Source: Takakia lepidozioides
Lineage: Eukaryota; Plantae; Bryophyta
Direction of reading: 5' to 3'
Assembly: GCA_030704615.1 (NCBI GenBank)
Contig: CM060731.1
Location: 6,758,001 to 6,822,000 of the forward strand
Length of the DNA: 64,000 nucleotides
Position 1 is the first letter of the stretch. Each line of letters begins with the position of its first letter. Position numbers and translations under genes: made by a program. Below the pieces are notes generated by a model that did no database searches, was not told the origin of the DNA, and worked only from the letters and a program-made list of their open reading frames with translations. This document shows positions 1 through 62,910 of the stretch, piece after piece.

Positions 1-210
1 CTACCAAAGGGAATTCCTCTAGGCCCAAATAGGTGGAGGGTTTAGTGGGAAGCGAAGGGGGGACCGTTATGTCCCGGTGAGCAGCCGAAGCTCCAAGTTG
101 GTCCGGCGGCCAGGTTGGGAGTCAGGCGCGCGCATCAAAGCGAGTAACTATGACTTGAAGGGGAGCTTACCGAAGTGAGGTACGCGATCGTCTTTGGGAT
201 TGGCCTCATC

Positions 211-16370: not shown

Positions 16371-16421
16371 TATATAAATACTGCAAGAGATTTGACTTCA
16401 TGATTGACTTCGACTAGTGGG

Positions 16422-17618: not shown

Positions 17619-20310
17619 AATGTCAGTACACTAAGCGAATTCATCACCCAAGTCATCGCGTGCGACAATCGTTTGTTCGAAAGACGTCAAGAAAGGCGAT
17701 CCGGATGGTCGACGACACATCATGTCGCTACTACTACGACACCAAATACCACGATCCATCAGACATCCGGTAGTGATCTTATGCAAATTGATGTTGTTCG
17801 ATTCAAGCCATTGACGCAACAAAAAAAACAAAGACGGCGCTTGAATGACTATGTCTCTATTACGGAGAAAAATATTACACAGCACTAAACTGCCCCAACA
17901 AGAGAAAATTCAAAGCTCGGGGCACAACTTCAGTGTTGGGTACGGCGAAGTCGGAAAATGAAGATGTCCAGTCACAGTAGGGACCATGCGACTGGATACC
18001 ACCAATTCCTCACTTGAAAAATGTCTTTTACTACCTCTAGACCATACACCTTGCTACACAATTCCTATAAAAATCAGAGCGCAAAATCAAGACATCTCCA
18101 TAGAAGCACGTTGGATTCAAAGGCTTCAACTTGTTTTATTGATAAAGACTTTGCGAAGCAAGACAATCTAATGTTTATAAAGCAGAAAAAAATTTCGGCT
18201 CCTGTTGAAGTCATCGAGGGACGACCACTAGCATCAGGGAACGTTGACCATGAAACTCGACCCCTCGAAGTAAAACTCGAAGATCAGGTATCGTAAATTG
18301 ATTTCAACGTCATCCAATCTCCTCCGAACCCTGTGATCCTTGGGCTCCCCTGGTTTGTGCTACACAACCCTGACATCGACTGACGATTGTGAAAAAAAAT
18401 TGTGAGACGAAAATGTAAGAACACCAAGGATGATTTTTCTTGATTTCTTGGAGCTATGGCCTTCATGAGAACAACAAAGAAGGACACGACATTTGCGATT
18501 TATGCGATTCCGATCAACACAACAACAGACCAAGGTACTTCAACATTACTCATTTAATATCAAGATTTCAAGGATGTCTTCGAGAAGAAAAATGTAGACA
18601 TGTTGTCGGAACATCGACCTTATGATTGTGCAATCGAGTTGCAAGAAGGAGCCCAACCACCATTCGGGTCAATTTCTAAATATTTATCTTAGACAGAGTC
18701 GGCTGCTTTACGTGAATACATTGATGAGAATTTGTCAAAAATTTCATCCGACATTCAAAATCACCCGCGGGAGCGCCTATCTTATTTGTGAAGAAAAAGG
18801 ACGGGTCGTCACGCATGTGCGTAGTTTATCGATGACTCAACAAAGTCACTATAAAAAATCTTTACCCGTTACTGCTGATTTCCGGACTTCTCGAACAACT
18901 TGGACGAACAAAATTATTTACAAAGATCGACTTGAGAGGAGCTTACAACCTTGTACGAATAAGGAGATAAATGGAAGACTGTTTTTCACACAATGTATGT
19001 GCATTTCAAATATAGTGTTATGCCTTTATGCTCTAGCGATTTTCCAGCATATGGCGAATGACATCTTTCGAGCATTTTTAGATGACTTTATAGTCATCTA
19101 TTTGGATGATATCTTGATATTTTCACAAGACGAAGATGACCATGACAACCATGTACGTTTGGTCCTTGATAAGCTATGAGAAAAAAGATTATATGCCAAA
19201 TTGGAGAAACGTTTTTTCCATCAACCCGAGGTGGAGTTTTGGGGCTACATTATTTCCGACAAGGGAGTTTCGATGGATCAAAAGAAAATACAAACCTTTG
19301 TCGAATGGAATAAGTCGGCATAAGTTCGAGACGTGCAATGTTTTTTGGGAATGGAGTATGTCACTAGCAAGGTTTGATTTTCTTATTACCTACTGCCCCG
19401 GACATCTTCAGGGAAAACCAGATTTTTTTTCGACGATCGTATCTGGCGCCATAAGAAGGGAATGCAACTTTCGACCAATAGAAATCCATCATCTTGAAAC
19501 CAACAAACCTCCAATTGAATACGTTATCCATGTATGTGTTAGAGCAAAAGACCACAACACTGACCTTACAGCCTTTTTCAACCGTTACCCATTCCCAAAG
19601 GTCCATGGTTATCTTTATCATTGGATTTCAGTACGGACTTTACAATCTCTAATGCAAACGATTCAATCATTGTTGATGTGGATCGCTTAACTAAAATAAT
19701 GTCATTTCATTCCATGTAAGACGACTATTACAGGTGAAAAAACTGATCATTAACAACATCTATTGTCTTCATGGACTCCCAAATGATATTGTATCTGATC
19801 GAGGACCACAATTCATATCAAACTTTTGAAGGAGATTATTGCATATATTAAATACAAAGATTAACATCTTTACAACAAATCATCCACAAACTGACGGCCA
19901 AACTGAAAGCATAAATCAAATTTTGGAGCAGTATCTTCGCTGCATAACAAATTATCAACAAGATAATTGGACAGACCTCTTGCAATTGACCGAATTTGCC
20001 TACAACAACATCATACATTCATCAACCAAAGAGACTCCCATTTTTCTCCAATTATGGTCATCATCTTCGAGCAGACCTTCTCCACATGAAGAATGTTGGA
20101 AGCTTTGCTGTAGAAGACCTCGTCACTCATCTTGTTACCATTCAAAAGGAGCTTACGTTCCAACTAGCAGAATGTCAAAATCAATATAAGAAGTATGCAG
20201 ATCGACATCGAAAACTTCAACCCAAATTCAAGGTCGAAGATCCTTTATGGCTCCTTCGACAGAACATACAAATCACGAGACCATCAAGGAAGTTGGATTA
20301 TAAACGCCTA
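17613..20310 (+). mobile_element. Degenerate family-2 gag-pol, resuming at 36159-36312 after the hAT insertion
   Basis: Fragments MQIDVVRF, YLDDILI, HPQTDGQTE and SRKLDYKRL. Sequence at 36159 (ctatgactattcaaaatt) continues the same region, as seen in the minus copy at 37260-37300. Confidence 0.88.
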
Positions 20311-20356
20311 GTAGTCGTAAGATGAAATGGTTCTTAGTTACACCGGCTTTAGTTGG

Positions 20357-20391
<35 letters not shown>

Positions 20392-20699
20392 CTCTCTCTA
20401 TTAACGCCATAGTTGCAAATTTGGACGTGACGTGGCGTTGACGCGTCAGCGTCACGTCCGACGTTAGCGACGGACGTGCGTCACGTCACGTCCTAAACCG
20501 ACGTTACTATACATAAATATCTTTATTTTTTTACTTTACTATTTATTATTTACTATGAGAACCGACGTGGCAACCGATGTGGCCTCATTACGTGGTCTTC
20601 ATTAATTATCTGTAAAATTTATATATTATGATTTATATTGTCAATCATGCGACCGTCAACAAAGGTTGGTCGGACAAATTTTATTTATTTATAAATAGG

Positions 20700-21120
20700 T
20701 GCGACCACCAGAAGGGGGTGGTCGCACATTTTTTCTTATTTTTTAAATGGGTGCGACCACCAGCAGGTGTTGGTCGCAGCATTTTCATTTTTTTTAATAG
20801 GTGCGACCACCACCAGGTGTTGGTCGCAATTTTTTCTTTTTTTTAAAATAGGTGCGACCACCAGCAGGTGGTGATCGCAACTTTTTCATTTTTTTTAAAT
20901 AGGTGCGATCACCAGCAGATGATGGTCGCACATTTTTAATTATTTTTTAAATGGGTGCAACCACCAGCAGGGGATGGTCGCACATTTTTAATTATTTTTT
21001 AAATGGGTGCGACCACCAGTAGGGGATGGTCGCACATTTTTAATTATTTTTTAAATGGGTGCGACCACCAGCCGGTGGTGGTCGCAGACTTTTTTTTTTT
21101 TGTTATTAGGTGCGACCGCT
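20700..21120. repeat. Palindrome array 1: TGCGACCACC-N7-GGTGGTCGCA, 8 full units plus a half unit
   Basis: Units start at 20700, 20752, 20802, 20853, 20904, 20956, 21008, 21060 and 21111 (half), with T-rich spacers. Confidence 0.95.
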
Positions 21121-21186
21121 CCCTTGACACGTGGCGAGGCGTGAATGGGCAGCAGATGCGGTCGCACGTCAGGCCTCTCCAGGCAG

Positions 21187-21193
21187 TATATAA
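21187..21193 (+). promoter_or_regulatory. Putative TATA box of the kinase gene
   Basis: TATATAA just after array 1, followed by a plausible 5' UTR intron (21388-21470, gtaagg...ccgtag) and the ATG at 21483. Confidence 0.6.
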
Positions 21194-21482
21194 GGGCCTA
21201 CCCCTCATTCCCAACCCACTTTTTTCCCTCTCTGAGAGTGCGGTTCTGGGGCTTCTTGGAGTTTGAACTTCGGTGGCTAGGACTGAGCGTGGGGGGGAGG
21301 AGAAAGTGGATTTGTGTGGGAGACGAGTTTCTGCCTTTTTTCCTGGGACTACAGGAGAGTTTGCTTTGGGTACTATACCAATAGAGGGTAAGGAAATTGG
21401 TCTGCTAGTATATAAGGTTATCAATAGTTTGGGTTTAGTTTTCCGTCACGAAGCCGTGTCTATTCCGTAGAGTACTTTCATC

Positions 21483-22979
21483 ATGTCCGGAAACGTTGCT
21501 TCGAACGCAGTGTCAGGGGGTTCCTCGGGAAGTGGGCATAAAGGTAGGAAGCGTAAACATGCACATGAACGAGATAGTCAGGTCAACAAAAAAGACTATC
21601 CAAGCGCAGAGGCCGCGAAGGTGGTGAAGCAAGTAGTGCTGGATTATTTGAAGGACAATGACATAATGCGTTTGAATCTTTTGTATGTCCGACATGGGAA
21701 TGAGGGGTTCCTTAGATTCCAGCACAATATGAAGATGAGAATGAGGGAGGCTTTGGCCGGGGATGAATGGGAGGAGGACATGGCGAAGTTCCAGTTCACG
21801 AAATGGATGGAGGACCGGGCCCATGATGCCACATGGAATCTGAGGCAAACCATAGACAAGTTTGTTACGAGAACACCTGTAGCTGAACTTCAGAGGAGGA
21901 GTTGTTTGTGCTTGTGGATTGGTGGACTGACATGGCAAAGGCCCACGCCAAATGACGTACAAAACCACTCCCAGAGAAGGCAGGGTCCTCGTCCATGGAT
22001 GCGGCATTGAACGTGAGATACATATCCACAAACGCACAGGTACAACAACTCGACGCGCCCAAACAGGGAGGGTATGGTACAATTCGGAGGGTTAGAATTG
22101 TTGGGGATCATTCATTCCTCCATCTTGGGAGCTAGCAAGGAAAACGCCCAGGGAAACAAATGTTGAGCTTGCCAAAGTCTAACATAACAATGAGGCGTTG
22201 GCTGTAAAGTTCCATCATTTCGGCATCATAAAGTATTTTGCGTTGCATCCACGTCGAAATGAAGGTTACACACATTAGTAGAATGGGGGGACCATACGAT
22301 CATGGTTGAGTATTGACAGGAAATGGGGGAATGATCGGGATAATAGGGAGTTAATGGAACGACGGGGGACGGAGCAGGAAATGCAGGAGATCAACCGACT
22401 GGTTCGATTCCGACAGAATCGCATCCAATTGGCATGGGCGCTTTTGCACATCATGCTCAACGTCCATAATCACCACCTCTTGCACAACGACATGTCCCCC
22501 GACAACATCTTGTTGCATTTTCTACAATGGTCTGAAGATGTGTACATCGGGGTATGTGATTAGGGGATGGCCTCCACGACGGATGACCCAAAAACCACGT
22601 TGTACATTTTCGAGAGCAGAGACAAGATGATAAAGACTCTCGCACATAGATGGTGGATTGCACCTGAAATTGCAAATTGTTCATAATGTAGCCAACAATC
22701 AGTCAGATGGCACACCTCGTAGGCCCCCTCTAACCGTGCCAATCAGAGACCTTTGCAATTGGAAAGATAGCCCAGACAATAAATGGGGGTAACACGTTCG
22801 ATGCAAGTCTGTTCAACGATATGTCTACTGGAACCTGTTTTGCTTCCGCTCTGGAAAAATTGTGTGTAGACACAGTAGAGTTGCGGTACAAACTATAAAA
22901 TGTTGTGAAGCGTTTCATGACGGGGCTATTCAATTGGCCTGAGCCCAAAAATTGCTGGAGGATGGATAGAAACTTGTAG
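21483..22979 (+). pseudogene. Transposon-borne protein kinase with an N-terminal extension carrying an NLS-like KGRKRKH; disrupted
   Basis: Gly-loop QGGYGTIRRVR (~22065), catalytic loop HNDMSPDNILL, VCD*G (DFG position), WWIAPE and SETFAIG occur in kinase order. Several stops and frameshifts. Confidence 0.85.
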
Positions 22980-23148
22980 ACCTCTGACTGTACTTCATGT
23001 TTGAATAAATGTTATTTTCAATTGTGTTTGTCTCGTACCATAATGTTTTAATGGTTTGTTACTTGGCCATGGCACCTAGGTCCATCATATGGGATAATCA
23101 AGCACCACACCCACGAATCTTGAAGAGTGACAATGTACACCGGGTCAA

Positions 23149-26100
23149 TGGGTGAACCAATCATTCCCCTGCCAAATGATTTTAGATTGATTTGAAACTT
23201 TGAGAGTGTGTTGTACATGCCCTCTTTAAGTTACTTGACAAGTATGAGGTCAATCTAAAATGGTTCTAAGGGTGAACCAATAGTTCCCATATTAAATGAT
23301 TCATGATTGAAAATTGGTTGAAAAGTTTAACGAGTCGTTCAGGGGGCAAATGATTATTTCTTCGCTTGCAACTCTGTGTACGTGATTTGTACGTACTTAA
23401 GCACATATGGACCAAAGTTGAACTACAACAAAGTTGTTTGAATTGGTTATTCAAATTCATAAGGAGAAACAACCTTTCGCTTGCACATGAATTGTTTTTA
23501 ATTCCATTTTGAAGTCGTATGCTTGATAACAACATGAAGAGTTGCATGCAAAATATCACCATAAACAGACATCGTTTGCATCCAAAACACATTTTATTCC
23601 CTCATTTGCACTCCAAGGTGAAATTATCTTCAACTACGTGCACTCTTCATAGAAAGTTCTGTAATAGTGAGCATAGAGCAAAGGATGAACGTTTTTTTCC
23701 AAACATTTTTCCTTGGTACATTTTTTGGCAAGGATGTGGTGGTGTGAGGGTTCAACTCACAGAACAAAATCAAGCCAAAAACAAAATCATTGCGCCCCAC
23801 ACTCATTGCGCCCCACAATCCTATGCCCTCTAAATCATTTTATTTAGTAAAAATGCAGTTCAATTCAAAATTGGATGAAAGGGTGAACGGAAACTTCCCC
23901 GATGAAATGATATTTTATTGCTCCGAAACTAGCAAGTGTCTTCTACATGCCCTCTTACACGTCTTTGAGAAGTATGACATCAATCTAAAATGGTTTAAAG
24001 GGTGAACCAATCGTCCCCCTACCAAATGATTTTAAATTGATTTGAAACTTTGCAAGTGTCTTGTATATGCCCTCTTACAGGTCTTTCACAAGTTTCAAAT
24101 CAATCTAAAATGGTTAAAAAGGTGGATCAATCATGAACATATCAAATGATTTTGGAGTGCTTTAAAGCTTTGCAAGTGTCTTTCACATGCCATTTTAAAG
24201 GTACCGGACAAGTATGAGGTTAGTAAAATATGGTTAAAAGGGTGAACCAATTGTTCCCCTATCAAATGATTTTACATTGCTTTGAAGCTTTGCAAGTGTC
24301 AGCCACGTGCCCTCCTACAAGTACCGGACAAGTATGACGTGAATAAAAAATGGTTGAAAGGGTGAACCAATCATTCCGCTATCAAATGATTTTATATTGC
24401 TTTGGATGTCATTGCTTTGGTAATTCTAGCCCCCCAATGGCCCATTGTAACCCTTGAATTACAATTCAAAATGCAATTCAAGCCCTTCAAATTGGTAATG
24501 TCAGTCCCTAAAATGACCAACCCCGGCCGCCCCTCAAATTGTAATTTGAGCCCTTGAAATTGTCAATTCAACCCCTCAAATTGCAATTGAAGCCCCTGAA
24601 ATTTAATTCCAACCCCTCAAATTGCATTTCTAGCCCCTGAAATGACAATTCCCGCCCCTCAAATTGCAACTGTAGTCGTGAAATGGCAATTGCTAGTGCA
24701 GCCCCTGAGATTGGCAATTGAAGCCCCTGGAATGGCAGTTTCAGCCCCTTACATTGCAAGTCCAGCCCCTCAAATTGGCAATTCGAGCCTCATAAATGAC
24801 AATTTCAGCCCCTGAAATTGGCTATGGGTGAACTAATCATTCCCTACAAAATTATTTTGGATTCATTTGAAACTTTGCGAGTGGCTTGTACATGCCCTCT
24901 TAAAGTTACTAGACAAGTGTCAATGTTAAATGGTTCAAAGGGTGAACCAAGAGTTCCCCTGTTGGATGATTCATGATTAATCGTTAACGATTGATCTCAT
25001 ATTACACTGGGACCTATCAGAGGGTACATTGAACACACTGGCCAAGTCTCAAAACGAACAAAAAATCATTTGGATGGGCAACCATCCGTCGGCTCATTGA
25101 ACGAATTTCGATTGATCTCATATTACTCTGGGGCCTCTTCCATGGCACATTGAAGATACTGGCCAAGTCTCAAAGCGAACCAAATCATCTCGATGGACAA
25201 TCATCCGTTGAGCCATCGAATGAATTTCGATTGATCTGATATTAGTCCGGGACCTGTGAGATGGCGTCTCCAACGTACTGGCAAAGTTTGGAAGCAAACA
25301 AAAATGATTTGGATGGGCAACCATGCGTTCACCCATTGAATGTATTCCACTGGATCTATTATTGCTTTGGGACCTGTTTGGACTGTGTTTCGCGTGCTCA
25401 CGATTTTTATTTTTTTTGGTTTTTGAATGGGGCGTGTAATGTAGCCATATGCAACGTGCGTGCCAAATTTGGGACCGATCATAATTCATTTGGACCCAAA
25501 ACCACAGTTTCTTCCCTGTTTTACACTCCAAACTTGATTTGTATTCAACTTCATGCACTCTTCATATAAAGTTCTGCAATAGTGAGCGAAGAAAACACTT
25601 TTTTTTTGGAACATTTTTGATTGGTCCAAATTTTGGCGGGGGAGTAGTGGTGGGATGTTGGAAGCCGCAGAACAAAATTGTGCCAAAAACAAAATCGATA
25701 CGTGCTAGAAACCCCCAATGAAAAGCAGTGCAAACCTATTTATTGGCTTAAAATTAATTTAAATTCAATTACATTATGGAATGGCTTGGTGTCGATGGGG
25801 AGGCAAATGATTCATTCGTCTGTTGTGTCTCCGCACATGTGTCGCACACATGTTCAAGCACATGCGGACAAAAGAGGGGCTTCAACCACATCCGTTCAAT
25901 GGGTGCAATAGTCGTGCACGAAGTGCATGATTTCTTTTTCGCAATGAACAAAAACCAGATGACAACTGAACGCCTCATTGGCCCATCGAACGAATTTCGA
26001 TTGATCTCATATTACATTGGGACCTATCAGAGGGTACATTGAACATACTGGCCAAGTCTCAAAATGAACAAAAAATCATTTGGATGGGCAACCATCTGTC

Positions 26101-27620
26101 AGTCCATGGAACGATTTTCGATTGATCTCATATTACTCTGGGGCCTCTTCCATGGCACATTGAAGATACTGGCCAAGTCTCAAAGCGAACCAAAATCATC
26201 TCGATGGCCAACCATCTGTTGAGCCATCGAATGAATTTCGATTGATCTGATATTAGTCCGAGACCTGTGAGAGAGCGTCTCGAACGTACTGGCAAAGTTT
26301 GGAAGCAAACAAAAATGATTTGGATGGGCAACCATGCGTTCACCCGTTGAATGTATTCCGCTGGATCTACTATTGCTTTGGGACCTGTTGGACTGTGTTT
26401 CGCATGCTCGCGATTTTTTTTTTATTCGGTTTTTGAATGGGGCGTGTAATATAGCCATATGCAACGTGCGTGCCAAATTTGGGACCGAACATAATTCATT
26501 TGGACCCAAAACCACAGTTTCTTCCTTGTTTTACACTCCAAACTTGATTTGTGTTCAACTTCATGCACTCTTCATATAAAGTTCTGCAATAGTGAGTGAA
26601 GAGAACACTTTTTTTTTGGGGCATTTTTGATTGGTCCAAATTTTTGCGGGGAAGTAGTGGTGGGATGTTGGAAGCCGCAGAACAAAATTGAGCCAAAAAA
26701 AAAATTGATACGTGCCAGAAACCCCCAATGAAAGGCAGTGCAAACCTATTTATTGGCTTAAAATTAATTTAAATTCAATTACATTATGGAATGGCTTGGT
26801 GTCGATGGGGAGGCAAATGATTTATTCGTCTGTTGTGTCTCCGCACATGTGTCGCACACATGTTCAAGCACATGCGGACAAAAGAGGGGCTTCAACCACA
26901 TCCGTTCAATGGGTGCAATAGCCGTGCACGTAGTGCATGATTTCTTTTTCGCAACGAACAAAAACCAGATGACAACTGAACGCCTCATTGGCCCATCGAT
27001 CGAATTTCGATTGATCTCATATTACACCGGGACCTATCAGAGGGTACATTGAACACACTCGCCAAGTCTCAATGCGAACGAAAATCATTTGGATTGGCAA
27101 CCATCCGTTGGCCCATTGAACGAATTTCGATTGATCTCATATTACTCTGGGGCCTCTTCCATGGTACATTGAAGATACTGACCAAGTCTCAAAGCGAACC
27201 AAAATCATTTGGAGGCAAATGATTTATGCGTCTGTTCATTTATTTGTGATTAATCGTTAATGGTGAAAAGGATAAACCAAAGGTTCATTGATCAAAAAAA
27301 ATTTGAAAGATTTGAAATTTTGCCAATATGTTCTACATGCCTCTTACATGGACCGGAAAAGTATGAGATCAATAAAAAATGGTTCACAGGAGGAACCAAT
27401 GGTTACTTGATGTGCCGATTTCTGAATGCTTTCAAACTTTGCCATTGCATTGTACATGCCCTCTTAAAGGTACCGGACAAGTATGAGTTCGATTTAAAAT
27501 ATTGCAATGGTATCTTCATTCAGCAATTTTTGATTGTTTTGAAACTTTGCCAGTATATTGTACATGCCGTCAAACAGGTACCAAACAAGTATGAGGTCAT
27601 TCAAAAATGGCTCAAAGGAT
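23149..27620. repeat. Hierarchical repeat block (~120-bp, ~21-bp, ~110-bp and 1010-bp periods)
   Basis: gggtgaaccaa-led units at 23149, 23270, 24000, 24120, 24240, 24361, 24826 and 24940. gcccctcaaattg units at 24430-24820. 1010-bp units start at 24988, 25998 and 27008. Confidence 0.9.
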
Positions 27621-27713
27621 GAACCTCGTATTTCCAAAAATTACGTAGACTATATAGTGGGTTGCACATTTAAGTTTTCGCAACCTGAGACCTTTGGCCT
27701 ACTCCCTACGTTT

Positions 27714-30289
27714 CTAGCCTTTATAGTCATCTTCATCTAGATTTATTACTTCGTTGTCGTCATCTCCAGATGTTGATGAAGATGCTCCGGGTGTAGAGGA
27801 CGTGCCTCCACCAGTACGGAGAGCTCGAGGTTGGGCTCGAGTGGTCAAAGAGGGACCCAGTGTTGTGTGGTCCACCCTTGCCATCATGCGTAGCGTTCTA
27901 AGCGAGTGCTGATTCTCTTCCAAATTTGCCAGAGCCGGGTGTGTTGCTCTTGCTACGGCGGCATGCAATTTTTCAATTAAATCCGATATGTTTGGAAGTG
28001 GCAAAAACACCTTTGGAATAGGGGCAACTTGGTCACGCCATGTGTTCTGCCAATACTTTTCCACACTCGTGATGACAGCCTTGAAATTGTCCAACACCTC
28101 ATCCTGCTGGGGGTCTCTGCGCAATTCTGGAAGAAATGGCCTATCATCCCGACGAGGCACCCAGTACGTCTCATTCATATCCTCCCAACGGATGCTAGCG
28201 GCCTCCAACTCCCTGAGAAATAGGTCTCTCCCAATCGGTTCGCGATTGTATGGGTCGTTTTCCGCTGGCACCCACGGATCCTCAGGCAGTCGAAAGAATT
28301 TTTGTCTGGTACAGCTCTAATGCCCTCCCAAGTTCCGGCAAAAAAGCTCCATTTGGACTGGGTCCCGTATGCCTCTAGCACGCACGGTTATTTCCCAGTT
28401 GGATGTCACCCGAAAGGTCACCGGATCCTTAACCCTAGTTAACGTCTTCGCATCCAAGGCGTGCATCTCTCTTTGAGCATCCCATGTCATTGTCTCCCCC
28501 TAGTGCTGCCAATTTAAAAAATCGTAAGGCGATACATCCAATGCATGTTGTACCGGTTGTACTCGTATCCCTTGGGCATATTGTCTTGCAACCCAAACAA
28601 CTCGTAGAAACGTCGATGGATTGATCCACGGCAGTCAGGGCATTGGCTGGCTTGCATGGCTGCCGATATGAGACATGTGGGATGGAACAAATGGCCACAT
28701 GAACCAAGCATATAGTCTCTCTCCGGTCCATAAGGGTTTAGGCACATTGTGCACACCGTACCATCTGTTACCCATGACGCTGGATCGCTCTGTGGTATCC
28801 ACGTCCGTTTATCCTCATTAATGTAGGATGACATTCTCGGCCTGATGTCCCACTCCTCCTCTACTTCCAAATCCCAGTTTATGCTGTTATTGGTATCGGA
28901 AATTGTATGCACACAGTGCTCAAACATGGCATGCACATCACCCCATGTGGTGAATCCAGTGTACTTCGACGTGAATACATCACGCACAGTGTCGTGCCTT
29001 TGCAAATTAGCATAGATGTTATCTATGCTTCGATTCGACAAACGTGCTGCACGTTGGAGGAACGACAACGCTTCTTCTATCCATGTTTCCCGCGATGCTA
29101 GATGGCCCGCCCATGTCACCCAATTTTGCCAATTCCCCTTCAATCATAGCCACGATCGGATTTGCATGACATTTGAGTACTGATATGCAACAGCCCTAGC
29201 TTGCTCGCGTTCCCCCACAAGCTGCTCTAATTCTTGTTCTTGGGCCGATGTAATTTGTACGGCTGAACATTCCTCAATTTCCACTACGGGGTCCTTTCCT
29301 TTTCTTGCCCTCTCCGCCGCAAGTCTTTCTTCCTCAACCCTCGTCGGGTCCAGTTCAGACGTTTGCATTTCATTCCCATGCCCGATTGAGTCAACCCCAT
29401 CGATGACGCGGTCAATGTCCATTGGTGACATATTCAAACGCGCCAATATGTCTTGCTCGTTGGTGATTGGCCTCGGGTCCAGAAGCACACCGCGTATGCT
29501 GTCGAGAGTCCCCAACCCCATTCTTTCTAGCAACTTCGCTATTTGCCACCGTTGCAAATGAACAATGTCTTGCAGGTCTTTGATGTGTTGTTCATGTGTG
29601 GCCAACTGTTCCTCCAACGGACAGCGTACCTCGCCCCCCTCCACCTCAGACGTTGAAGGCCCGGCTGCGGAGACCTGTTGCGGCATATAATTTGGAGGTT
29701 GGTCTTCATTTCCTTCTTCTTCCACATTGTCATTTCCATCCGTCTTTCCTCCTTCTTCCACCTTGTCGTTTCCATCGAACCGTATGATGTCCTGCCCCTG
29801 ACGTATATACAAGTCTAGGATATCAGAGAACATGTATAGTCTAGTACGCTATCTCGCAGTGGCAGTTTGCCAATCCACTGGTCGCAATAAAATCAACTCT
29901 GTGTACAACATGGCTGCAAATAAATACGGAACCTTGTTGTTGACGAGCGGTTGACCCCACAATGTTGTATGTAACTCCTTTGCCCTGTGGCGGAAATGCG
30001 GGTTGGCGCAGGAATGCAAGTTAGCTTGATTTTGTTTGGTTTGTGGATCATGCCTATCTCTGGGCCACAAACGATTTATGTGACACCAGTCCACAAATTT
30101 CCTGCAGTCACCAAGCAACCACCGCTGCCCCAACTTCCAAACTTCCCTACCTGGTTCCGCAAGAATGTTGGGGTCATTGTATATGTCCCAACGAAGTTCA
30201 CGCCTGGCCCCTTTTGTTTTTTTTTTTGGAGGTCCAGGTTCATTATCGTCATCCCTGGGATGACCTCCTTTGTCTTCCTCCTCCGCCAT
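27714..30289 (-). pseudogene. Transposon-borne large (~850 aa) RING-H2 protein, putative E3 ligase; disrupted
   Basis: ORFs 30289-29849, 29833-29144 and 29143-28514 are in one frame, separated only by single stops. One frameshift near 28515 leads into the frame of 28271-27714. RING-H2: CTMC...CGHLFHPTC...CPDC. NLS-like PPKKKTK and coiled-coil-like segments. Confidence 0.8.
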
Positions 30290-30716
30290 TTATGGCTTTG
30301 GCTTATCCCTACTCGACAGGTGTTTGCTAAGAAAAATGCTCTCCCAACCCTCATAAATCGTACCTAATCCTACTCCCTAATGAATCCTCCCCAAGTACTA
30401 GAGGCAGGTGTCACTCCCTCGGCAGTTCTAAGTGATATGACGCAATGTGCAATGAAAAAAACGTGGGTGCTAGGGGAGGGCTTCCCGGGAGGTACTCAGC
30501 ATCGATTTCGTAGAATCCAACGGCCCAGAATACCCCCCACCCAACCAATAGCACCCCTCTCCACTTGGACTCAATGACAAGGAATGCAACATCCCATCGC
30601 CCACCAAGTCCTGGTGTGAAAAAAAGTGAGGGAGAGAATGGCCTCCAAGGCCTTATAAGCCCCCCTCCACACTCGGGGCGCGCGCTGTCATCATGATTGC
30701 GCACGCTAGTAATAGC

Positions 30717-31640
30717 TGCGACCGCCAGCAGGAGGTGGTCGCATCTTTTTTTCTTTTCCTTATTATGTGCGACCACCAGCAGAGGGGTACTCGTAGATTT
30801 TTATTTATTTTTTATTTTTTATAGGTGCGACCACCAGCAGGAAGGTGGTCGCAGATTTGTTTATGTTTTTTAATGGGTACGACCACGAGCAGGGGGGTGG
30901 TCGCAGATTTTTTTTTTTTTTTTAATTGGTGCGACCACCAAAGGGGGGTGGTCGCAATTTTTTATTTTTTATTTTTTAATCAGCAGGGAGGTGGTTGCAT
31001 ATTTAAAAATAAATAAAAAATAGGCGCGACCACCAGCAGAAGGGTGGTCGCAGAAATTTTGTTTAAAACAAATAGGTGCGACCACCACCTACACTATTTT
31101 CTTTTTCTTTAATAGATGCAACTACCAGCAGGGGGGGTGGTCGTAGGGGGGTGGTCGCATAATTTTCCGATTTTTTAATATCTACCAACAGTCAGTAGCT
31201 CAGTTGGTTAAGTGCACTGTGTGCGACCCGGACGATTCTGGGGTCAAATCTTGCTACTTGATGGGCGCAAATAGGAATTAAAAATGTGGTCGAAGAAGCC
31301 GGGGGTGTCTGGAGAATAAAGTGGCGAGTATGTGGTATGGTTCGTGGGTGGTGCCCCATTCCTACGCCTCTTGGCGCATAAATGAAAGAGGTTATTTTCT
31401 CCTCTCACTACTAAGGGGCCTGATTTGTGAGCTGTCGCTCCCAGGTGTTTCCCAAAATAAAATAAAATAAAATATGCGACCACCAGCAGGGGTAATCAGT
31501 AAATCAGTAAATAGGTGCGACTACCAGCAGGGGGGTGGTCGCAACATTTTTCTTTTATTTTAACAGTTGCGACGACCGCTACTGGTGCTCACACAATTGT
31601 TTTTTTTTAAATAGGTGCGACCACCAGGAGGTTGGTCCCC
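30717..31640. repeat. Palindrome array 2 (internal), about 12 full or partial units
   Basis: Same 27-bp palindrome at about 30717, 30768, 30826, 30878, 30930, 31024, 31117, 31516, 31568 and 31616. A TATA-like ttataa at 30653-30658 faces the RING gene. Confidence 0.9.
31191..31260 (+). other. tRNA-like Pol III A/B-box cassette inside array 2
   Basis: TAGCTCAGTTGG (31196) and GGGTCAAATC (31241) at tRNA-like spacing. No convincing full cloverleaf. Confidence 0.55.
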
Positions 31641-31952
31641 TTGCACCTGTATGTATGTTTGGAGAGACAGATGAAAAGCACATGTATCGACTCCCCATGA
31701 ATTTGTGAAGGGGAAGATAAATGTTGGGAGCTGCACCTGGCCTTTGTGGCTTTCAAAACCATAATAGGAAATCAACAATGTAAAGGTAATGACGAAACAC
31801 AAACACACGCACAACCACCAAACCCTTTCTTGGGTACACATATTCCACCATTTTTATTTCCGTACACGTATGCATGTACCCAAACTGAAACATGGATATC
31901 CATGGAAACATACTACACATCATGTGACAAGTCACAGAAGTTATAGCTGTAC

Positions 31953-34900
31953 CTAATTCCGTCTGGCACGACGACGATGGTATGATCTCACGTCTAGTAT
32001 AAAATCGTCGTCCCCACTCACTTCACCCCCGTTCCCATGATCAGTGCTAGAATCATGATCTCCATCTGTTCTTTCGTTTCCAGAGGCAACTGGCCGTTGG
32101 ACCTGTAGTCGTCCTCGGAGTACGTTCAGTTGTCTCTCTGGTCGATTTCCACTCCTATCATGAATATCATCTAGGGTATCAGGCCTGTTCACAAGTCGGT
32201 CACCAACAAAAGGTTGCACAATTCTCTGCCGTTTCTGGGCTTGTCCCGGATTTCGTGGTGGCCTTGGAGCAGGTCTCGTATGAGGAAGGTTACTCGCACG
32301 TACATCAGAGGGGCCGACATGAGAGGAAGGGGCATGAGATGGACGAGCGAGGGTCGAGGGAGCACGGTTCACATGCGGACGTCGTCGGGCCAGATGAAAC
32401 GACAATGGCCGGTCGTCGTCATCCGATGTTTTGACTTGCAGAAGTCCCGCATCAGAAGAACCATCTCCCAGGATCGGAGTAGCGATGGAAGGAATTACAT
32501 GAGGGGGAGAGAGACTAGATGGACAGCATGGGATGGACCGGCTTGAGAAAGAGAAACATGAGATGGAGCGGGGTGAGATGAAGCACGGTTCACAGGGGCA
32601 CGATGTCGGTGAAGGAATGACAACGGCCGGTTGTCATCATCCGACGATTCGACCTCCACATCGTGGAACTCGTGGTGGGGGAGAGTTGACCTCAACTTCA
32701 TTGTTGAGAGTGTGCTCCACTGGGGGGAAGGGGGTCCGTAATTGGGATGACACCATGTTGCAGTTCATCAACAACAAGGTCATTGAAGGATGGATGCATT
32801 GCACCATCATCGTCATTAAATTCATATGGTTCATGTGGAGGATTGCCCACATCATCGGACCCATCCCAACCGTCGGAGTCGGAGTCCCTCGCGGCGTCAG
32901 TGTCATCATTGCTGCTAGATTGGACCTCTGAGGCAGATTCTTCAGACAACAGATTCTTCTCGTACCATGCAGATGCGTCACTTGCTCTCCTCTCTCGCAG
33001 TAGCCTACAATTCGTGTAGACATAAACCAATTTGTCAGCCCTGGCAGGATTCAACCTGTTGCGAATCTTGTTGTGAACAAACAAGTAACTGCTCCATTTC
33101 CGCTCACAGGACGAGGCATAGCACACTTGAGCAAGAATACGCTTTGCAATGGAAGCTAACGCTCTTGCTCTAGCTCCAATCAGATCTCACCATTCATGTG
33201 GCAACATGTTCATTGCTTTTGGATCCGACATGTCATGGAAATGATTCTGCCGATCCAAGAAGCACTGGTACTTAGACAACGCTCGCTATTCCATGTTCAA
33301 GGGCGCAAGTTGCATGATGACCCGTACAAGCCCGGCTTTGGCATCCACATCGTCTCTCAAATCCGTATTGTCCAGCAAGAATGGATTCAGCAAGGCCCCC
33401 GCATAATGCAAGTCCATGCGAACCATCCGTTTGCGGTCGTAAAATGCATCCTCAGTCCTTGTCGCCAAATCATCGTCCATAGAAAATAGAGGACGCCTCA
33501 AGGATTGCACGTGCTTCTCAAGGTTTTCCAATATCAACCATGCTTTATCCATTATTGGTTGTTTTCCATCAAACTCCCGCAAAGCAATCAACACCGGCTC
33601 CACCATATACACAAAATTTGCACATTTCGCCCAGAAATCGTCGGAGCGAATGATTGCGCGGACCCTCCGACTTTTGCTCAAAGACTTGGACTTACGAGAG
33701 TCGCGTAAGGTGCCCACATACGCATCCCATTGAGGGTCAATGATCACCTGCTCCAGACCCGCCCTCACAGTCATCAGTCGATCCACCATCAAAAAGTTTG
33801 TGGCAAAGCGGGTTTCACCCGGGTTCCTAAGGCTGTATTTGGGTTCATGCTTTCTAAACAATGCCAGAGGGATGTGATGTGTACGAATGAACGTCACAAC
33901 CGACTTTGCCCTTTTACTAGTTGTTTCATCCATGATTTTTTCCCCAATCCTCCAAAAGAAGATCAAAGATATGAGCAGCACACCCTTGGTAATATAGATG
34001 GGGATATCGTACATCAAAATATTGGAATAGATGCATTGTCCGTGCACACTTGGACAATTTTATCAGCTCCAATTTTATCGATGTAACTCGTCAACAACCC
34101 TGCTTGATAACGTGCATCTTTTCTCTCCCGCTTGTGTCAACGGATCCCAAAAATTGTTCCCCGCAGGACAGACCAGCATGACATTGAACAGTGGTCGATT
34201 AGTAACAGAACTCCAACCGTCCGCACATATAGTGCTTCCATATTTCCGGAGAGAATCACCTGTTTTTTCATTCACCTTTTGGGTGAGGTCAGACATAGCC
34301 TTTTCTAGCAATCTTGTGCGGAGATTGCGATAACTCGGAGGTGTGTATGTGGACTTGGAATCGGACGTGGCTTTGACAGCAGCCACAAACGCAGGAAGCC
34401 TCGAGACATTGAACGGAATATTGGCCTCGTAGAAAATTGGGCCCACTTCTTATCCAGAGTCCTCCTGTGCGACAAATTTAAGCCTTCTTGCATTGATTGT
34501 TGCCTCAATGGTCTGGTCCGTACAAGTGCTGGCGTACAATCGGGTGTTGCTCCTGACCCACCGGCTTCTCCACGAACAGTAGACGCCTCGCAAGAATCCC
34601 CCTGGGTACAACTCTGAGGGACAGTTTGATTCGAACCTGGAGTGTTTGGCTCAGAAGCCGCGGCCACATCAAAGAGACGGTGGGATATTGCCTCCACATT
34701 GGGCAAAGTGGGCTTTCACTCGCATGGAGGCTTTTGGGCACAAACTAACCCCTGCATTCTTCCCATCTCTGTAGCCGAGGTGATATAACATGCGATCTTT
34801 GCGACCCGCCAGCTTCAATGCACAAAGATTGCATTGAACACCGTCCTTTTTGTGCGGGTCTATGGTGAACCAAGGGATCCACTCCTCCCCATCCTCACAC
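31953..34900 (-). pseudogene. hAT transposase (BED finger, DUF659-type core, hAT dimerisation domain, long low-complexity tail); frameshifted
   Basis: WIPWF...CNLC...RMLYHL...C; ICADGWSS; VQVCTDNAS; CAAH; TRFATNF; SSCERKWS...HNKIRNRL...LVYVYTN. Confidence 0.92.
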
Positions 34901-35240
34901 CCAAAACCCTAACCACAGACTTAAGGTTGAACGAAGAACACTAGTGTACTTGGTAGATTTGTCAAGAGCAATAGAAGTTAGAACAGAATGCGATGGCCCA
35001 ACACTACGGCATCAATCCAAGTGGATCAATGCACCATGTAGTATTGTGCTTTTTGACAATTTGCTGCAGTGGCTCTGGTGGAAGCCACAACAGCAAAAAG
35101 TCCGCACCCTCCTCTTGGGCTTACACTCTTGCTCAAGGAATAAAGAACATTCACTCGCCACAAAAGTGTTTGCCACAAAAGAAGTGAGGGGCATTGGGAC
35201 CACTTTATATATCACACGCTCGACGAATCAGATCCAATGT

Positions 35241-35952
35241 TGCGACCGCTCCAGGTCGCACGAGAAGTCGCATGTTATTTTTTTTTTAAAAACTGCTGCG
35301 ACCACCCTCATGCTGGTGGTCGCACCTATTAAAAAAAAAAATGCTGCGACCACCCCCATGCTCGTGGTCACAGAGATTATTTAAAAAAAATAAAAAAATA
35401 AAAATTGCTGCGACCACCTTCCTGCTCGTGGTCGCACCTATTAAAAAATAAATAAAATTCTGCGACCACCCCCTGCTGGTGGTCGCCACCAATAAACAAA
35501 ATTTCTGCGACCACCCCCATGCTGGTGGTCGCACATATTAAAAAAAAAAAAAATGCTGCGACCACCCCATGCTCGTGGTCACAGAGAATATTTTTTAAAA
35601 ACAAAAAAAAAAAAATTCTGCGACCACCCCCCTGCTGGTGGTCGCACATATTAAAAAAACAGAAAAATGCTGCGACCACCCCATGCTGGTGGTCGCAGAT
35701 ATTAAAAAATAGAAAAATGTTGCGACCACCCCCCTGATGGTGGTTGCACCTATTACAAATACAATAAAAATTGTGCGACCACCAGTAGCGGTGGTCGCAA
35801 CTGTTTAAGAAAAGAAAAAAATGTGACCACCCCTGCTGGTGGTCGCATCTATTTTTAAAAAACAAAAAATGCTGCGACAACCCCTTTGCTGGTGGTCGCA
35901 ACTATTAAAAAAATAGATAAATTATGCGACCACCACTATTTGGAGGTCGCAC
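35241..35952. repeat. Palindrome array 3, about 13-14 units, inverted relative to array 1
   Basis: Same palindrome with A-rich spacers. A minus-strand ATATATAAA at 35204-35212 faces the transposase. Confidence 0.93.
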
Positions 35953-36312
35953 CAATTTAACAATAATGATTTAAAAATGACCTCAACTATTGGCGGACGG
36001 AGTAATTTATAAAACAATTCATTTACTTGTCAAGGTGTCGCTTGGAATACAACGTGTCCACCTACGTGGCATATTTTTCACCTAACTCATGTTTTACTGA
36101 TTTTCCGGCAAAACTGACGTGACGTGATGTCACTGACGTGTGCAACCCTGATTAACGCCTATGACTATTCAAAATTATTCTTCAAGTTAATCCGGTCAGT
36201 TTTGGCCTTGAACTTCCACACAATATGTGCATCCATCCAGTCTTGTATGTCTCCTTATTAGAGTTATATCATCACTCAAGTATCTCCGGGAGAGCTTTTA
36301 CACCATCCCCAC

Positions 36313-36515
36313 TGTCAAGGACGAGAACATGACTGAACACAAACCAGAGGTCAAGACTAGAGGTGTAAGAATAGACAAGAAGTCAAGGTCGGCATGATGG
36401 GTAAACATGAATCAAAGATGAACTTTATAATACGGACAAGAGTACAAGATACTAGAACTGGACTTGAGTACTGGACTTGAGTACTGGAATACTGGAAACT
36501 GGACTGGAGAACTTG
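36313..36515 (-). repeat. R/U5 half of the LTR whose U3 half lies at 16422-17618
   Basis: The reverse complement ends ...gtccttgaca and shares ataaagttcatctttgattc with family-2 LTRs. It is flanked by CCCAC, the reverse complement of the GTGGG preceding 16422. Confidence 0.75.
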
Positions 36516-38330
36516 GGACCATGCAGTGATTTGAGCATTCTGATTTTCGAATCTGCCTTCAAACATGATTTCGTTGCCCTCGGGGTCCGAAGCCTCAACC
36601 TCCAACAAGAGTATTAGACTTCAAATAGGCTCTACTTGTCGTCGCACGGGGTTCAGACGAGGAAGCATGCGTCGCATTGGTGGCCCGTCGTCCCGAGAAC
36701 TTCGTCGTTAAGGTTTAGAAAGTCGAAACGGCTGGTCTGGTAGTTGTGTAAGCGATAGCTCCAATGTATCCGATTCTTGTAACTCCATGTTGCTAATACA
36801 AGATGCAAGAGTGCTTGAAGTGTAGCCATATATACTGATGTGTGGTGCTTCCTCTCTTTAGCGTGTATCAAGTACACTTGAAGCTAACTTGACTGATATC
36901 ATCGTTGTGACGATTTATTGACGTGTGGCTCGAGGCTTAGCTGGATATCGTTGATGAAAGTCTTGAACTTTGTCAGGTGCATTGATAAGATTGGTTGACG
37001 GTTCCCACGTGCGTTCGCTAATGTCGTAGTCTTTTCAATGTACGAAATACACAAAACATCCATACTTGATGCGACAGTCTAGGACTTCGTCGATTTTATA
37101 CTCGATTTCATGATTGACTTCAATTGGTGGAGGTGGTACAGAAACTCTCATATGGATACTTGAGTGATGATACAACTCTAATAATGAGACATAGAAGACT
37201 TGGTGGATGCGCATACTTCGTGGGAGTTCAAGCCGAAAACTGCCCGGATTAATTTGACAAATAATTTTGAATAGTCCCAGGCGTTGATAATCCAACTTCC
37301 TTGATGGTCGTGAGGTTTGTATGTTTCGTCGAAGGAGCCATACACAATCTCCGACCTTGAACTTGGGTTGAAGTTGTCGATGTTGATCTGCATACTCCTT
37401 GTATTGTTTTTGAGCTTCGGCTAGTTGGAATGTAAGCTCATTGTGAATCATAGCAAGATAAGTAGCAAGGTTTTCTGCATCAGGGCTTCCGACAATCTCC
37501 ATGTAGAGAGGGTTGGCTCGAGGGTGATGACCATAATTGGAGAAAAATGGAGTTTGCTTCGTTGATGAATGTGTAGTGTTGTTGTAGGCAAACTCAGCCA
37601 ATGCAAAAATGTCCGTCCAATTATCCTATTGATAATTTATCGTATATCGATATTATTCCAAAATCTGATTTATGCGTTCGGTTGGACCATCAATCTGCGG
37701 ATGATAGGTTGTCGAGATATTGATCTTGATATTCAATATTTGAAATAATCATCTCTAAAAAATTGATATGAATTGTGGTCCTCGATCAAATACGATGTCA
37801 TCCGGGAGCCCATGAATGTGGTAAATGTTGTTGAGAAAGAGTTTTGTCATTTCTTCACTTGTAACCATCTTGTTACATGAAATGAAATGTGTCATCTTCG
37901 TGAAACGATCTACGATAACAAAGATTGAATCATGGGTGTTCGAAAATGGAAGGTCTGTAATAAAGTCCATTGATAAGGACAACCATTGACACTTGGGAAT
38001 GGGTAATGGTTGAAGAAGGCCGTAAAGTCGATGTCGTGGTCCCTTCGCTCTAGCACACGTGCCGCAAGATTTTATAAATTCTTTCACCAATTTCCACATT
38101 TGCGGCCACCAATAGTCCTTGAATATCAATTCGATTGTCTTATTGAAGCCAAAATGTCCCGCAGTCGGAAAATCATGACGTGTTTGAAGAATCCGAAGTC
38201 GTGTAGTCTTCTGAGGTACATAGAGAAGTCCCTTGAAATAAAGCAAATCATCTTTAAATTCGAAGTCGTTTGTAACATGAAGGTTGTCTCGAGGTCGATT
38301 TAGTTGACTTCGTAGTGTCTTAGCAAATCC
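36516..38330 (-). mobile_element. Family-2 gypsy fragment (integrase, chromodomain, 3' region)
   Basis: ORFs 37755-38246 (HHCC, SMDFITDLP) and 37035-37601 (EFAYNN, SRKLDYQRLG). Confidence 0.9.
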
Positions 38331-38537: not shown

Positions 38538-41500
38538 TGTCGCGGCCCTTTGCCTTGAGGGCGGGGGGGGGGGGGGGTGGTGGGAATCACAGGAGGGCTG
38601 CCCCTGTGGTGGGGGCGCGGCCTGGCCAGCGATAGGTTGGGGGGCTGAAGCACCCTGAGGTGTCCCAAGGCACTCAGGAGGCGGAGGCGCTCACTAGGTG
38701 GAGCCCTGCACACCGGGTTGCGGGGGGTGGCTCCAAAGGGGTGGTGGTAGCTAGCGGGTCTAGTGGGGGTGGCATAGGACTCACCATAGGGCGGAGACCT
38801 CGTGGGGGAGTCGTGGGAGTCTTGGGACTCATCACGGCCCAAGGGGTCGTGGTTGAGAGGGCCAGACCACCGCGACTCACCACCGGAGTCGAGGGTCTTC
38901 GTGGTGGTTCGCCATAAAATGACATGGCTGGTTGTGAAACCCGCGGACAGCTACAGAAGTATATATGGGAGTAGTAGTAACCCGAGACTGGTGCATGAAA
39001 GCCCGTTGGGTCACAAAAAAGAGTGAGTAAGCAAGCGAGCCCGGAAAGCGACCAAAGAGTAGGGAGCTGTTCCGGACTGCCATCTACCAAAGGGAATTCC
39101 ACTAGGCCCAATAGGTGGAGGGTCCTTTCGGGGAGCGAAGGGGGACCGTTATGTCCCGGTGAGCAGCCGAAGCTCCGAGTTGGCCCGGCGGCCAGGTTGG
39201 GAGTCAGGCGCGCGCATAAAAGTGAGTAAACTATGACTTGAAGGGGAGATTACCGAAGTGAGGTGCGCGACACTTGGTAACAGAGCCTAGAGTTCAGTAC
39301 GCGATCGTCCTTGGGATTGGCCTCATCATGGGGTCGTGCAAAGCCAAAGCGAAAGCGGAACGGCCCAAAAGATGATGACCCTGGTGAGCCCGATGGGGGC
39401 GACGTGTCACCGAGGCGGCCGTTTGCGGAAGCGATGCATGCTTCTGAAAATGAGGCCGCGCAGAGCGGGAGAAATCGAGGAGTCGGAGCCCGAGGAATCC
39501 TTGAGAGCTCCGAACAACCAACAAGATGCCCCCCATGCCGGCAGCCTTTTGGGAAGGGTTGCTGGCGCAGTTTGGCGGGACATTGAAAGACGTGTTGAAG
39601 GCGGCTAACGCCACTTCCCACTAAGGCGAAGTTTAAGGTGAAGCCTAAGGAACCCGGCACCTTGATGGCGTCCGAAATCGGAAGGCACTCAACACCTGGC
39701 TCTTGGAGAAGAGCAGTACTTTCGGGCGGCCAAGTTGAGTGACGAGGATCGGGTGGAAGTGGCTCCCACCTATTTGAGGGGCTATTGCTCAACAATGGTG
39801 GCAGAAACGCCTTCACGACCGAGGTCCAAGCCCGAGAAACCTTGAGCTGGAGTAGTGGTCAAGGAATTGATGAAGAGACAGTTTGTGCCCTCAACGCGTC
39901 CTGGCTCGCCCGGGACAAGATGAGGAATTTGAAGCAAACAGATGACATTCGGGGATATGTTCGGGCTTTCAATGTGCTGTTGCTCGAAGTCGCGGACATG
40001 GCAGAACCAGAAATGGTCTTCAACGTTTGTGGCGGGACTGGCCCCATGGGCCAGGCGGAAGTTGGAGGAGAAGCCACCCAAGACTTTGAACGAGGCTATT
40101 GAGAGGGCTGAATGTTTCTCAGATGTCCCTAGGGGTGAAAGACAAGGCCGTACGGAAGCTGAACCACAAGAAGATTGGCGGGAAGGTGACTCCTCCCGAC
40201 CGGAAAAGAAGTGGGATAGGCCACGCGGCGAAAATGGCACGTGGAAATCGAAGGGAGGCCTTCACACGTCAAGGCGGCACCCGTGCTTCAAAAGGAAAAG
40301 CGGGTGGACGGTTTGGCTTATGGCGGACAGAAGGCACCTTTGATGGAGTGTGTTTTCAATTGCAGGGAGCCCGGGCACATGGCCCAGAAGAAGGCACAAA
40401 ACCTCGACATTGAACATGACTCGGGCAACCACGGAGCTGTCGGAAGATACCATCAGTCACTTGGGGAGCGGTGGTGGTCGCCAGGACTTGCAAGGTAGGC
40501 AAAATTTTCTTGTGAGTTGTATCAGGGAACCTGGCGCCTTACGAAACGAAAAGGGAGTCAATTATTGTTCGTGGATGGGATAATATCCGGAACTAATGTG
40601 TCGTTGTTGGTGGACACAGAGACGTCGCACTCCTTCATGACACCGGCAACGGCACAAAAAGCTGGGACTCCCGACAAGTGACGTGGGGGCCTCTATTGAG
40701 GTGCGTTCTGCCAAAGGAGAACCACAGTTGGCGACAGGTTGGCGATTGATGTTCCTCTTCAAACTGGGGAGTTGGGAGGGACGTGAGAACTTCACCATCT
40801 GCGAGATCGATGGAGTGGATCTCATTTTGGGGATGACCTTTTTGAGCAAATCCGGAGCGGTCATAGATGGCCGCAAGAGGTAGTCACGCTGCCATGTGGG
40901 AATGGTGGCGAGGTTTTACGAGTGTCAGAAACGCCCAAATCCGTGGGAGGGCGAATAAACCTTCTGTCAGCAAGGGAGGGGCCGTGGAGGAGACCCACGA
41001 ATCCCAGTTTTTGCTTTACATAGAGAAGTGAAGGGAGAAGGCGATGGGGAGACCGAGCCCAGATTGGATCAAGGGGATTTTGGAGAAATACCAGGATGTG
41101 ATGCCGGAGGATTTACCAAGCGGCTTGCCACCGCGAAGAGGAGTTGACCACAAGATTGAGGTGATACCGGGAACGAAACCGCTTGCCAAGGCACCCCTAC
41201 CGTTAAGCCACAGGGAGTTGGTCGAGCTGAAGACTCAGCTCAAGGATCTAATGTCAAAGGGGTACATCCGGTCCGAGTAAGTCACCTTACGGAGCCCCGG
41301 TGCTATTCGCAGACAAGAAGGATGGGACGCTGCGGATGGTGTGTGTCGATTACAGGGCTCTGAATAAGGTGACTATCAAAAACCGGTACCCTTTGCCAAG
41401 GATCGACGACCTCTTCGATCGGTTGGCAGGAGCGAAGTATTTCAGCCGGATCGACTTGCGCTCCGGCTATCATCAAATTCGGGTGGCGGAAGGAGATGAG

Positions 41501-62597: not shown

Positions 62598-62910
62598 CCA
62601 GCACCGTGGGAACAGTATCAAAAGCAGTTGCAAGCGTGGCAGCAGCAGTTTACGCAACTGCAGCAGGAGTCACCCACAGCAAGCAAACAGCAGCTTCTGC
62701 AACGATGCAAGCGGCCGCCGTTGTTTGCCTTCTGTTTACGGCCACGGGGATTGGAAGCACGGCAGAAGTTACAAAAGCAAAGATCACAACGGAAACAAGC
62801 CAATGGAAGTTCATCTCGGCACTGGGTTAGCATGGGGTTCAATGAGGGCTCCCTGGACAGCCCCTCAAAAAGGTTATGTTGCGGAGAATCCACGAATGGT
62901 TCTTCAACTG
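62598..62910 (+). CDS. EPL-like gene, next coding exon
   Basis: Acceptor gcag|ccagca. Encodes PAPWEQYQ...PPLFAFCLRPRGLE. Donor g|gtgagc, phase 1. Confidence 0.82.

Follow-up and report, generated by a model that had tools for sequence, protein, structure and literature searches.

The window analysed here, a 64,000-nucleotide stretch of the bryophyte Takakia lepidozioides (assembly GCA_030704615.1, contig CM060731.1, positions 6,758,001 to 6,822,000), contains a single insertion of a hAT transposon at 20408-36150 that measures 15,743 bp and carries genes for a protein kinase and a RING-H2 protein in addition to its transposase gene. We conclude with high confidence that the copy is dead and belongs to a multi-copy, multi-gene hAT family in which these three genes have been inherited together and are kept by purifying selection on active elements. 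hAT elements are textbook single-gene DNA transposons, and the original prediction took autonomous members to be usually a few kb long with only a transposase. No accessory kinase or RING gene of a hAT element was found in the searchable literature, outside which lie most subscription papers and Repbase entries. In contrast to ordinary hATs, the elements described here are about 16-18 kb long, with two or three conserved extra genes that each have their own promoter and array.

Relatives, joint inheritance and selection

L009, a 17-kb contig, holds a whole 15.8-kb element with CAGGGTT ends and four open genes, encoding a kinase (+), a protein of 343 residues (-), a RING-H2 protein of 1039 residues (+) and a DUF659 hAT transposase of 966 residues (-). 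Copies of the L009 family at 98-99.8% identity have four different left flanks, so the family has moved recently. The flanks of L009 itself were considered as a target duplication and not counted, as they mismatch, which was put down to the collapsed assembly of several copies. In L018, an 880-kb contig from another sample, a complete 18.5-kb element with the same four genes, here decayed, is enclosed by a perfect duplication, TTCATCAT; an insertion of about 3 kb lies in its transposase tail (~14100-17100). The fourth gene, absent from the window element, encodes just the RING protein's N-terminal domain with a low-complexity tail, and lies at 4701-5732 in L009, 4386-5567 in L018, 692-1777 in L013, 4011-4574 in L019 and 3223-3774 in L027.

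The association extends to less complete loci. The RING gene adjoins the transposase in L014, L015, L016, L017 and L019, the kinase adjoins the transposase in L010, and a gene of the 343-residue type adjoins the kinase in L013. In L027, whose kinase is only 23-31% identical, a 343-residue-type gene, a RING gene and the kinase occur together with a hAT-type end, and the stretch examined contains no transposase. Upstream of the RING gene, 10 kb of L017 and of L019 contain no kinase, and in L010 no RING gene lies within 4 kb of the kinase; some of these gaps may be due to truncation. Copies with the same gene order and different target-site duplications had been called for, and the same gene set was recovered in L009 and in L018 with its own duplication, but gene order and orientation differ between families and the gene set is not invariant. 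L017 also has another related hAT transposase (1020-3960) ahead of its RING gene on the upstream side, in the opposite orientation and behind its own CAGGGTT end; this is a nested or adjacent element.

Public contigs were aligned to positions 19900-25800 of the window. In one run, 21,603 contig fragments gave gap-free coverage of the terminus, array, kinase and spacer, each variant site being represented by tens of distinct contigs. In a second, independent run, the contigs between 20486 and 25017 were collapsed and had an even depth (20-30). The window kinase frameshifts at 22109, 22674 and 22741 are missing there, and one contig, L008, which is 96% identical to the window, is open for 368 codons across the lesions of the window kinase. 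Frame-intact kin of the window element exist in the same species. Two runs of presumed RNA contain the part of the kinase that extends from about 22060 up to the stop, without the frameshifts of the window, and contain neither the promoter nor most of the spacer, which hints that frame-intact copies are transcribed.

Selection has acted on all of the element genes. The ratio of nonsynonymous to synonymous substitution rates (dN/dS) in pairwise comparisons with L009 was 0.17 for the kinase, 0.20-0.30 for the RING gene, 0.24 for the 343-residue gene and 0.21-0.29 for the transposase, with synonymous sites saturated in distant pairs. A codon model gave values between families of 0.14, 0.25, 0.16 and 0.23, respectively, which lean upward because decayed copies were included. 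RING and transposase trees of eight elements, including the window element, have identical topologies, and the identity matrices are correlated with a Mantel r of 0.994; since shared descent alone yields tree congruence, this indicates long joint inheritance and not interaction.

It is very improbable that the extra genes are Pack-type passengers, that is, recently captured host kinase and RING genes without function, or that the element is a nest of unrelated insertions. This would fit the differences in gene order between families and the window copy itself, whose decay is neutral (dN/dS of 0.86 for its kinase against L008, from its own family), but it is at odds with the purifying selection between families and with frames that stay open across proteins only 25-50% identical. 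Nor does it account for the genomic contexts, as each of the five independent kinase contexts, like every RING context read, is an element module and none is an ordinary host locus, or for the best match of the kinase among solved structures, which is weak (E of about 3e-5). Also against it are the single 8-bp duplication that encloses all of the genes in two genomes (window and L018) and the even sequencing depth along the terminus, array, kinase and spacer. Pack captures are characterized by fragmentary host sequence, an identifiable parent and mostly neutral evolution, while here the genes are full length, dN/dS is 0.14-0.25 and no host parent was found. The original prediction that these are dedicated element genes is upheld by their co-occurrence with hAT transposases and ends and by dN/dS values of 0.14-0.30. 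It had named in advance what would speak against it, namely kinase and RING relatives in ordinary host loci, no co-occurrence with hAT ends elsewhere or dN/dS near 1, and none of these was found.

The window copy: boundaries, genes and decay

The window element is flanked by an exact 8-bp target-site duplication, ATTAACGC, at 20400-20407 and 36151-36158; the chance of an exact 8-mer at two fixed positions is about 1.5e-5. Its ends, CATAGTTGCA and, on the reverse strand, CAGGGTTGCA, are alike at 8 of 10 positions and follow the pattern CA(G/T)..TG. The left terminus (20408-20495, +) combines this 10-bp imperfect inverted repeat with ACGT-rich subterminal repeats, which are also present at the right terminus (36110-36150, -), and relatives share this type of end and the ACGT repeats, with terminal inverted repeats of 10-11 bp. 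In the left flank, a 90-bp poly-T insert comes after a decayed Gypsy integrase. When the element, one duplicate and this insert are deleted, the flanks join into a sequence that aligns over 462 bp without gaps (82%) with another copy of the Gypsy integrase in the window (37587-37127). The restored continuity independently backs the element limits and, with them, the duplication and hAT-type termini that had been proposed. By every defining feature tested, the element is a hAT: the 8-bp duplication, short terminal inverted repeats with subterminal repeats, and a BED finger, DDE core and dimerization domain are all found, and mobility as a unit is indirectly seen in the four left flanks of the L009 family and in the duplications round the gene set in two genomes. 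The transposase as sole gene, which is typical of hATs and not defining, is replaced here by a set with two or three extra genes.

All three window genes are broken by stops and frameshifts, and colinearity with the intact relatives bears out that they are intron-free, with the kinase on the plus strand and the other two on the minus strand. The kinase pseudogene (21483-22979, +, about 500 residues) has at least 4 frameshifts and 5 stops, the RING-H2 pseudogene (27714-30289, -, about 860 residues) has 4 stops and 1 frameshift seen, and the transposase pseudogene (31953-34892, -, about 980 residues) has about 6 frameshifts and at least 4 stops. Broken genes were searched as pieces, and stops were dropped or set to X in script analyses. 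As counted from translations, the lesion densities of roughly 6, 2 and 3 per kb are similar in order, in line with the similar decay that had been suggested. The extra genes had also been described as full length, which holds for the family; the RING protein of the window is shorter than the 1040-1120 residues of its relatives. Compared with L008, 27 of 41 substitutions are C-to-T or G-to-A, affecting 6% of CG, 9% of CHG and 2% of other sites. The deamination at CG and CHG sites indicates that the host methylates the family, and the window copy decayed after it had been methylated.

From its motifs and fold, the product of the gene at 21483-22979 is predicted to be a eukaryotic-type protein kinase. 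Its basic N-terminal cluster is followed by some 140 residues that form a helical domain and then by the kinase domain, which keeps the glycine loop, the lysine, the helix-C glutamate, HND-x4-N with the catalytic aspartate and asparagine, and DWG as the DFG-like motif; Pfam Pkinase remains below the cut-off for P0001. The structural model is confident (predicted local distance difference test [pLDDT] of 85), and its structural matches are protein kinases at 12-14% identity. Motifs resembling nuclear localization signals had been noted, and basic N-terminal clusters were indeed found in 8 of 8 kinases tested, while localization itself stays predicted. A 93-residue kinase piece used as the query retrieved 83 clusters, with full-length members of 494-647 residues, drawn almost all from metagenome or read assemblies. 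No relatives were found in viral or prokaryotic contigs, which gives no support for a recent horizontal origin.

The RING-H2 finger (28628-28753, -) is of the C3H2C3 type, keeps eight of eight zinc ligands and lies inside a longer stretch of conserved sequence. A full-length relative RING protein as the query gave 14 matches, and a 209-residue piece gave none, an effect of the length limit. The N-terminal 150 residues (unclassified domain at 29798-30229, -) are homologous to the 343-residue gene of the relatives. This domain family comprises 78 clusters and has a confident predicted fold (pLDDT of 90). The nearest Atlas models are plant clusters with a template-modeling (TM) score of 0.43-0.47, and in one of these clusters Transposase_32 occurs in 23% of members, which is a lead only. 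The transposase has a BED-like finger, DUF659, D-D-E motifs (DGW, TDNA and SCE) that are kept in the window copy, and a long low-complexity tail. DUF659 was detected in the window, and both DUF659 and Dimer_Tnp_hAT exceed the cut-off in intact relatives.

The surroundings of the element are also rich in repeats. The insert of about 90 bp at 20311-20399 lies inside the Gypsy integrase, ends in a run of 32 T, has no Rfam match and is flanked by a 12-bp near-duplicate (20299-20310; 20399-20407 plus 36159-36161). It is probably a LINE-mediated retrocopy, and the hAT target is the right-hand duplicate of this older insert. One family of Gypsy retrotransposons with a chromodomain occurs at 175-4772, 39000-43900 and 50071-54431 (one nearly intact, two decayed), and a second, older Gypsy family at 11700-12850, 18600-20310 plus 36159-36420, and 37035-38250. 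A 31-bp GC-rich tandem array is found at 15925-16182, and a host gene with Tudor and Enhancer-of-polycomb-like domains (EPL1-Tudor) spans 57185-64000, where more exons come after an open frame of 1485 codons. The chromovirus-type Gypsy elements, this host gene and a match to a Streptophyta cluster mark the window as land-plant DNA.

Promoter arrays and possible functions of the extra genes

The original prediction described three arrays of one palindrome, and 41 of the 45 GCGACCACC-n-GGTGGTCGC 9-mers of the 64-kb window do fall inside them. Array 1 (20649-21166, about 10 units at 50-52 bp spacing) lies upstream of the kinase TATA box at 21187, array 2 (30718-31630) upstream of the RING TATA box (~30653), and array 3 (35242-35950, 14 units) upstream of the transposase TATA box (~35204). 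The palindromes are mostly 50-53 bp apart, or five helical turns, and each TATA box stands about 300-370 bp before the start of its gene with the array directly upstream, a promoter architecture that the extra genes share with the transposase, as had been claimed. In the relatives, nearly every gene is preceded by a GC-rich repeat array that runs up to a TATA box some 200 bp ahead of the start. The array core is common to the genes within one element and different between families (CGACCG in L009, CGGACG in L018 and L013, GACGGC in L015 and GCGACC in the window), although the shared core is weak in L019. The promoter arrays show a cis motif that has changed in concert across several promoters. 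The middle array is interrupted by an unrelated 280-bp insert (~31185-31465) that resembles a short interspersed element, with a tRNA-like start and an A-rich tail, and has no ARAGORN or Rfam match and no duplication found. Over the whole element, Rfam and ARAGORN gave no real RNA family, hairpin matches being due to chance.

The 4.5-kb repeat block that had been reported is present at 23100-27625, between the kinase and RING genes, and consists of 120-bp arrays, a 21-bp array (24529-24822) and a 1.01-kb unit in 2.2 tandem copies that are 94-95% alike (24988-27208). It has no match in the relatives. The 1.01-kb unit is related to the 120-bp arrays of the element and to 23560-23790, and is 30-100 times deeper in public runs than the rest of the element, so it exists outside the element family too. 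It is possibly a satellite derived from, or shared with, another element family.

The most likely function of the kinase and RING proteins, which we infer at somewhat less than an even chance, is that of a self-activation module against silencing. An element-encoded DNA-binding part, either the BED finger of the transposase or the unclassified front domain of the RING protein, would dock on the family-specific arrays before the TATA box of every gene. The RING protein would then ubiquitinate, and the kinase phosphorylate, chromatin or silencing proteins at the arrays, and all promoters of the element would stay on. The transposase is a candidate array reader because hAT BED fingers bind palindromic subterminal repeats (PMC10368747), and the N-terminal domain is a second candidate. 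The anti-silencing analogy with the VANC proteins of VANDAL elements rests on the motif arrays and not on protein relation. As originally drawn, it stands with regard to the family-specific motif arrays, which the window element and its relatives have in non-coding regions as VANDAL systems do, but not with regard to the extra proteins, which have no VANC-like Pfam or structure match. More tentatively, the elements may constitute a giant hAT lineage of seed-free plants in which a kinase family of their own and a RING E3 ligase, targeted to DNA and equipped with a new domain, read family-specific promoter arrays and overwrite silencing by phosphorylation and ubiquitination, possibly as a module exchanged between superfamilies. 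Such enzymatic anti-silencing would be of a kind so far described for no DNA transposon.

Several observations weigh against self-activation. The congruence of the RING and transposase trees is also expected from shared descent, a host factor, or the transposase by itself, could be what binds the arrays, and no VANC or TnpA homologue was detected among the element proteins. Comparisons with Pfam, PDB sequences, Foldseek, VIA (best Z of 2.9) and Atlas models identified no match or DNA-binding fold for the N-terminal domain. A tryptophan is common in the E2-binding helix of RING fingers and is missing here; the arginine that follows the last cysteine is kept in most cases. The RING proteins show no enrichment of SUMO-binding motifs (6 against 5.9 expected, with the L027 row partly out of frame), and the idea of a SUMO-targeted ligase, raised by an acidic hydrophobic motif at the end of the window RING protein, was dropped. 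The RNA status of the two runs that hold the 3' half of the kinase is a guess.

Alternatively, the kinase and the RING protein might regulate their own transposase, with phosphorylation activating it and ubiquitination removing it or with cell-type timing, and the arrays would be plain transposase or host-factor sites that coordinate three promoters. We regard this as rather unlikely. Ordinary hATs transpose without helpers, which argues against such a role, while the close codivergence of RING and transposase, the long low-complexity transposase tails rich in S, T, D and E, the binding of subterminal palindromic repeats by hAT BED fingers and the direct binding of MURA by MURB (PMC12973397) would agree with it. 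Less likely again is that the module works on host physiology at a distance from the element, in DNA-damage or cell-cycle signaling or as a haploid-phase toxin-antidote or drive system favoring carriers. A kinase and an E3 ligase are trans-acting enzymes, and gene sets vary between families as those of modular effectors do, but this leaves the per-gene, family-specific motif arrays unexplained, the high copy number with most copies dead fits drive poorly, and no toxin-like fold was found. We rank self-activation first, regulation of the transposase second, host physiology third and passive capture last.

Known systems and significance

The window element shares with DUF659-type plant hATs (models Ac, Tam3, Tag1 and Hermes) the 8-bp duplication, short terminal inverted repeats starting from CAG, subterminal repeats, BED-like finger, DUF659 and hAT dimerization domain, and D-D-E motifs. 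VANC targets are family-specific motifs in tandem non-coding arrays that diverge between related families (PMC5735166), and the targets of Spm TnpA follow the same array pattern (10.64898/2026.08.24.746577). Dedicated accessory genes and family-specific arrayed motifs are thus common to VANDAL elements with VANB/VANC, to Spm and to the present family, but the superfamily is another one, the accessories are a kinase and a RING-H2 protein without sequence or fold link to VANC or TnpA, and anti-silencing is proposed by analogy. Unlike VANDAL elements, which are defined by a Mutator transposase and a VANC-family protein, the window element has a hAT transposase. Pack-MULE and Pack-CACTA elements are likewise terminal-inverted-repeat elements with host-like coding sequence, but they mostly hold short fragments that pseudogenize (PMC13317346, PMC6431247), whereas the genes here are full length, lineage-wide, under purifying selection and without an identifiable host parent. 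The window element is neither a VANDAL nor a Pack element.

Accessory genes have been described in giant elements of the Mutator, EnSpm, Sola and KDZ groups. Among these are elements of algae, namely Plavaka of Bostrychia (10.1101/2025.02.11.637652) and Sola1-1_Ec32 and KDZ of Ectocarpus (PMC12477816), which also measure 15-30 kb, live in haploid-dominant hosts and have several conserved accessory genes and tandem repeats. In contrast to the present family, they have EnSpm, Sola or KDZ transposases and accessory domains such as methylases, SET, ParB and oxygenase, and no hAT, kinase or RING is reported in the two papers.

In summary, a hAT lineage that retains a kinase and a RING protein under transposase-like selection, down to 25-45% protein identity, amounts to plant transposon-encoded signaling enzymes. 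To our knowledge, the accessory factors of plant DNA transposons have so far been proteases, methylase-like proteins or proteins that bind DNA. Family-specific arrays together with a sequence-programmed activator could be put to use as a tool. Since intact, recently mobile copies of the L009 family are available in public assemblies, silencing evasion in a haploid-dominant plant is directly testable, and orphan kinase and RING genes annotated in bryophytes may belong to transposons.

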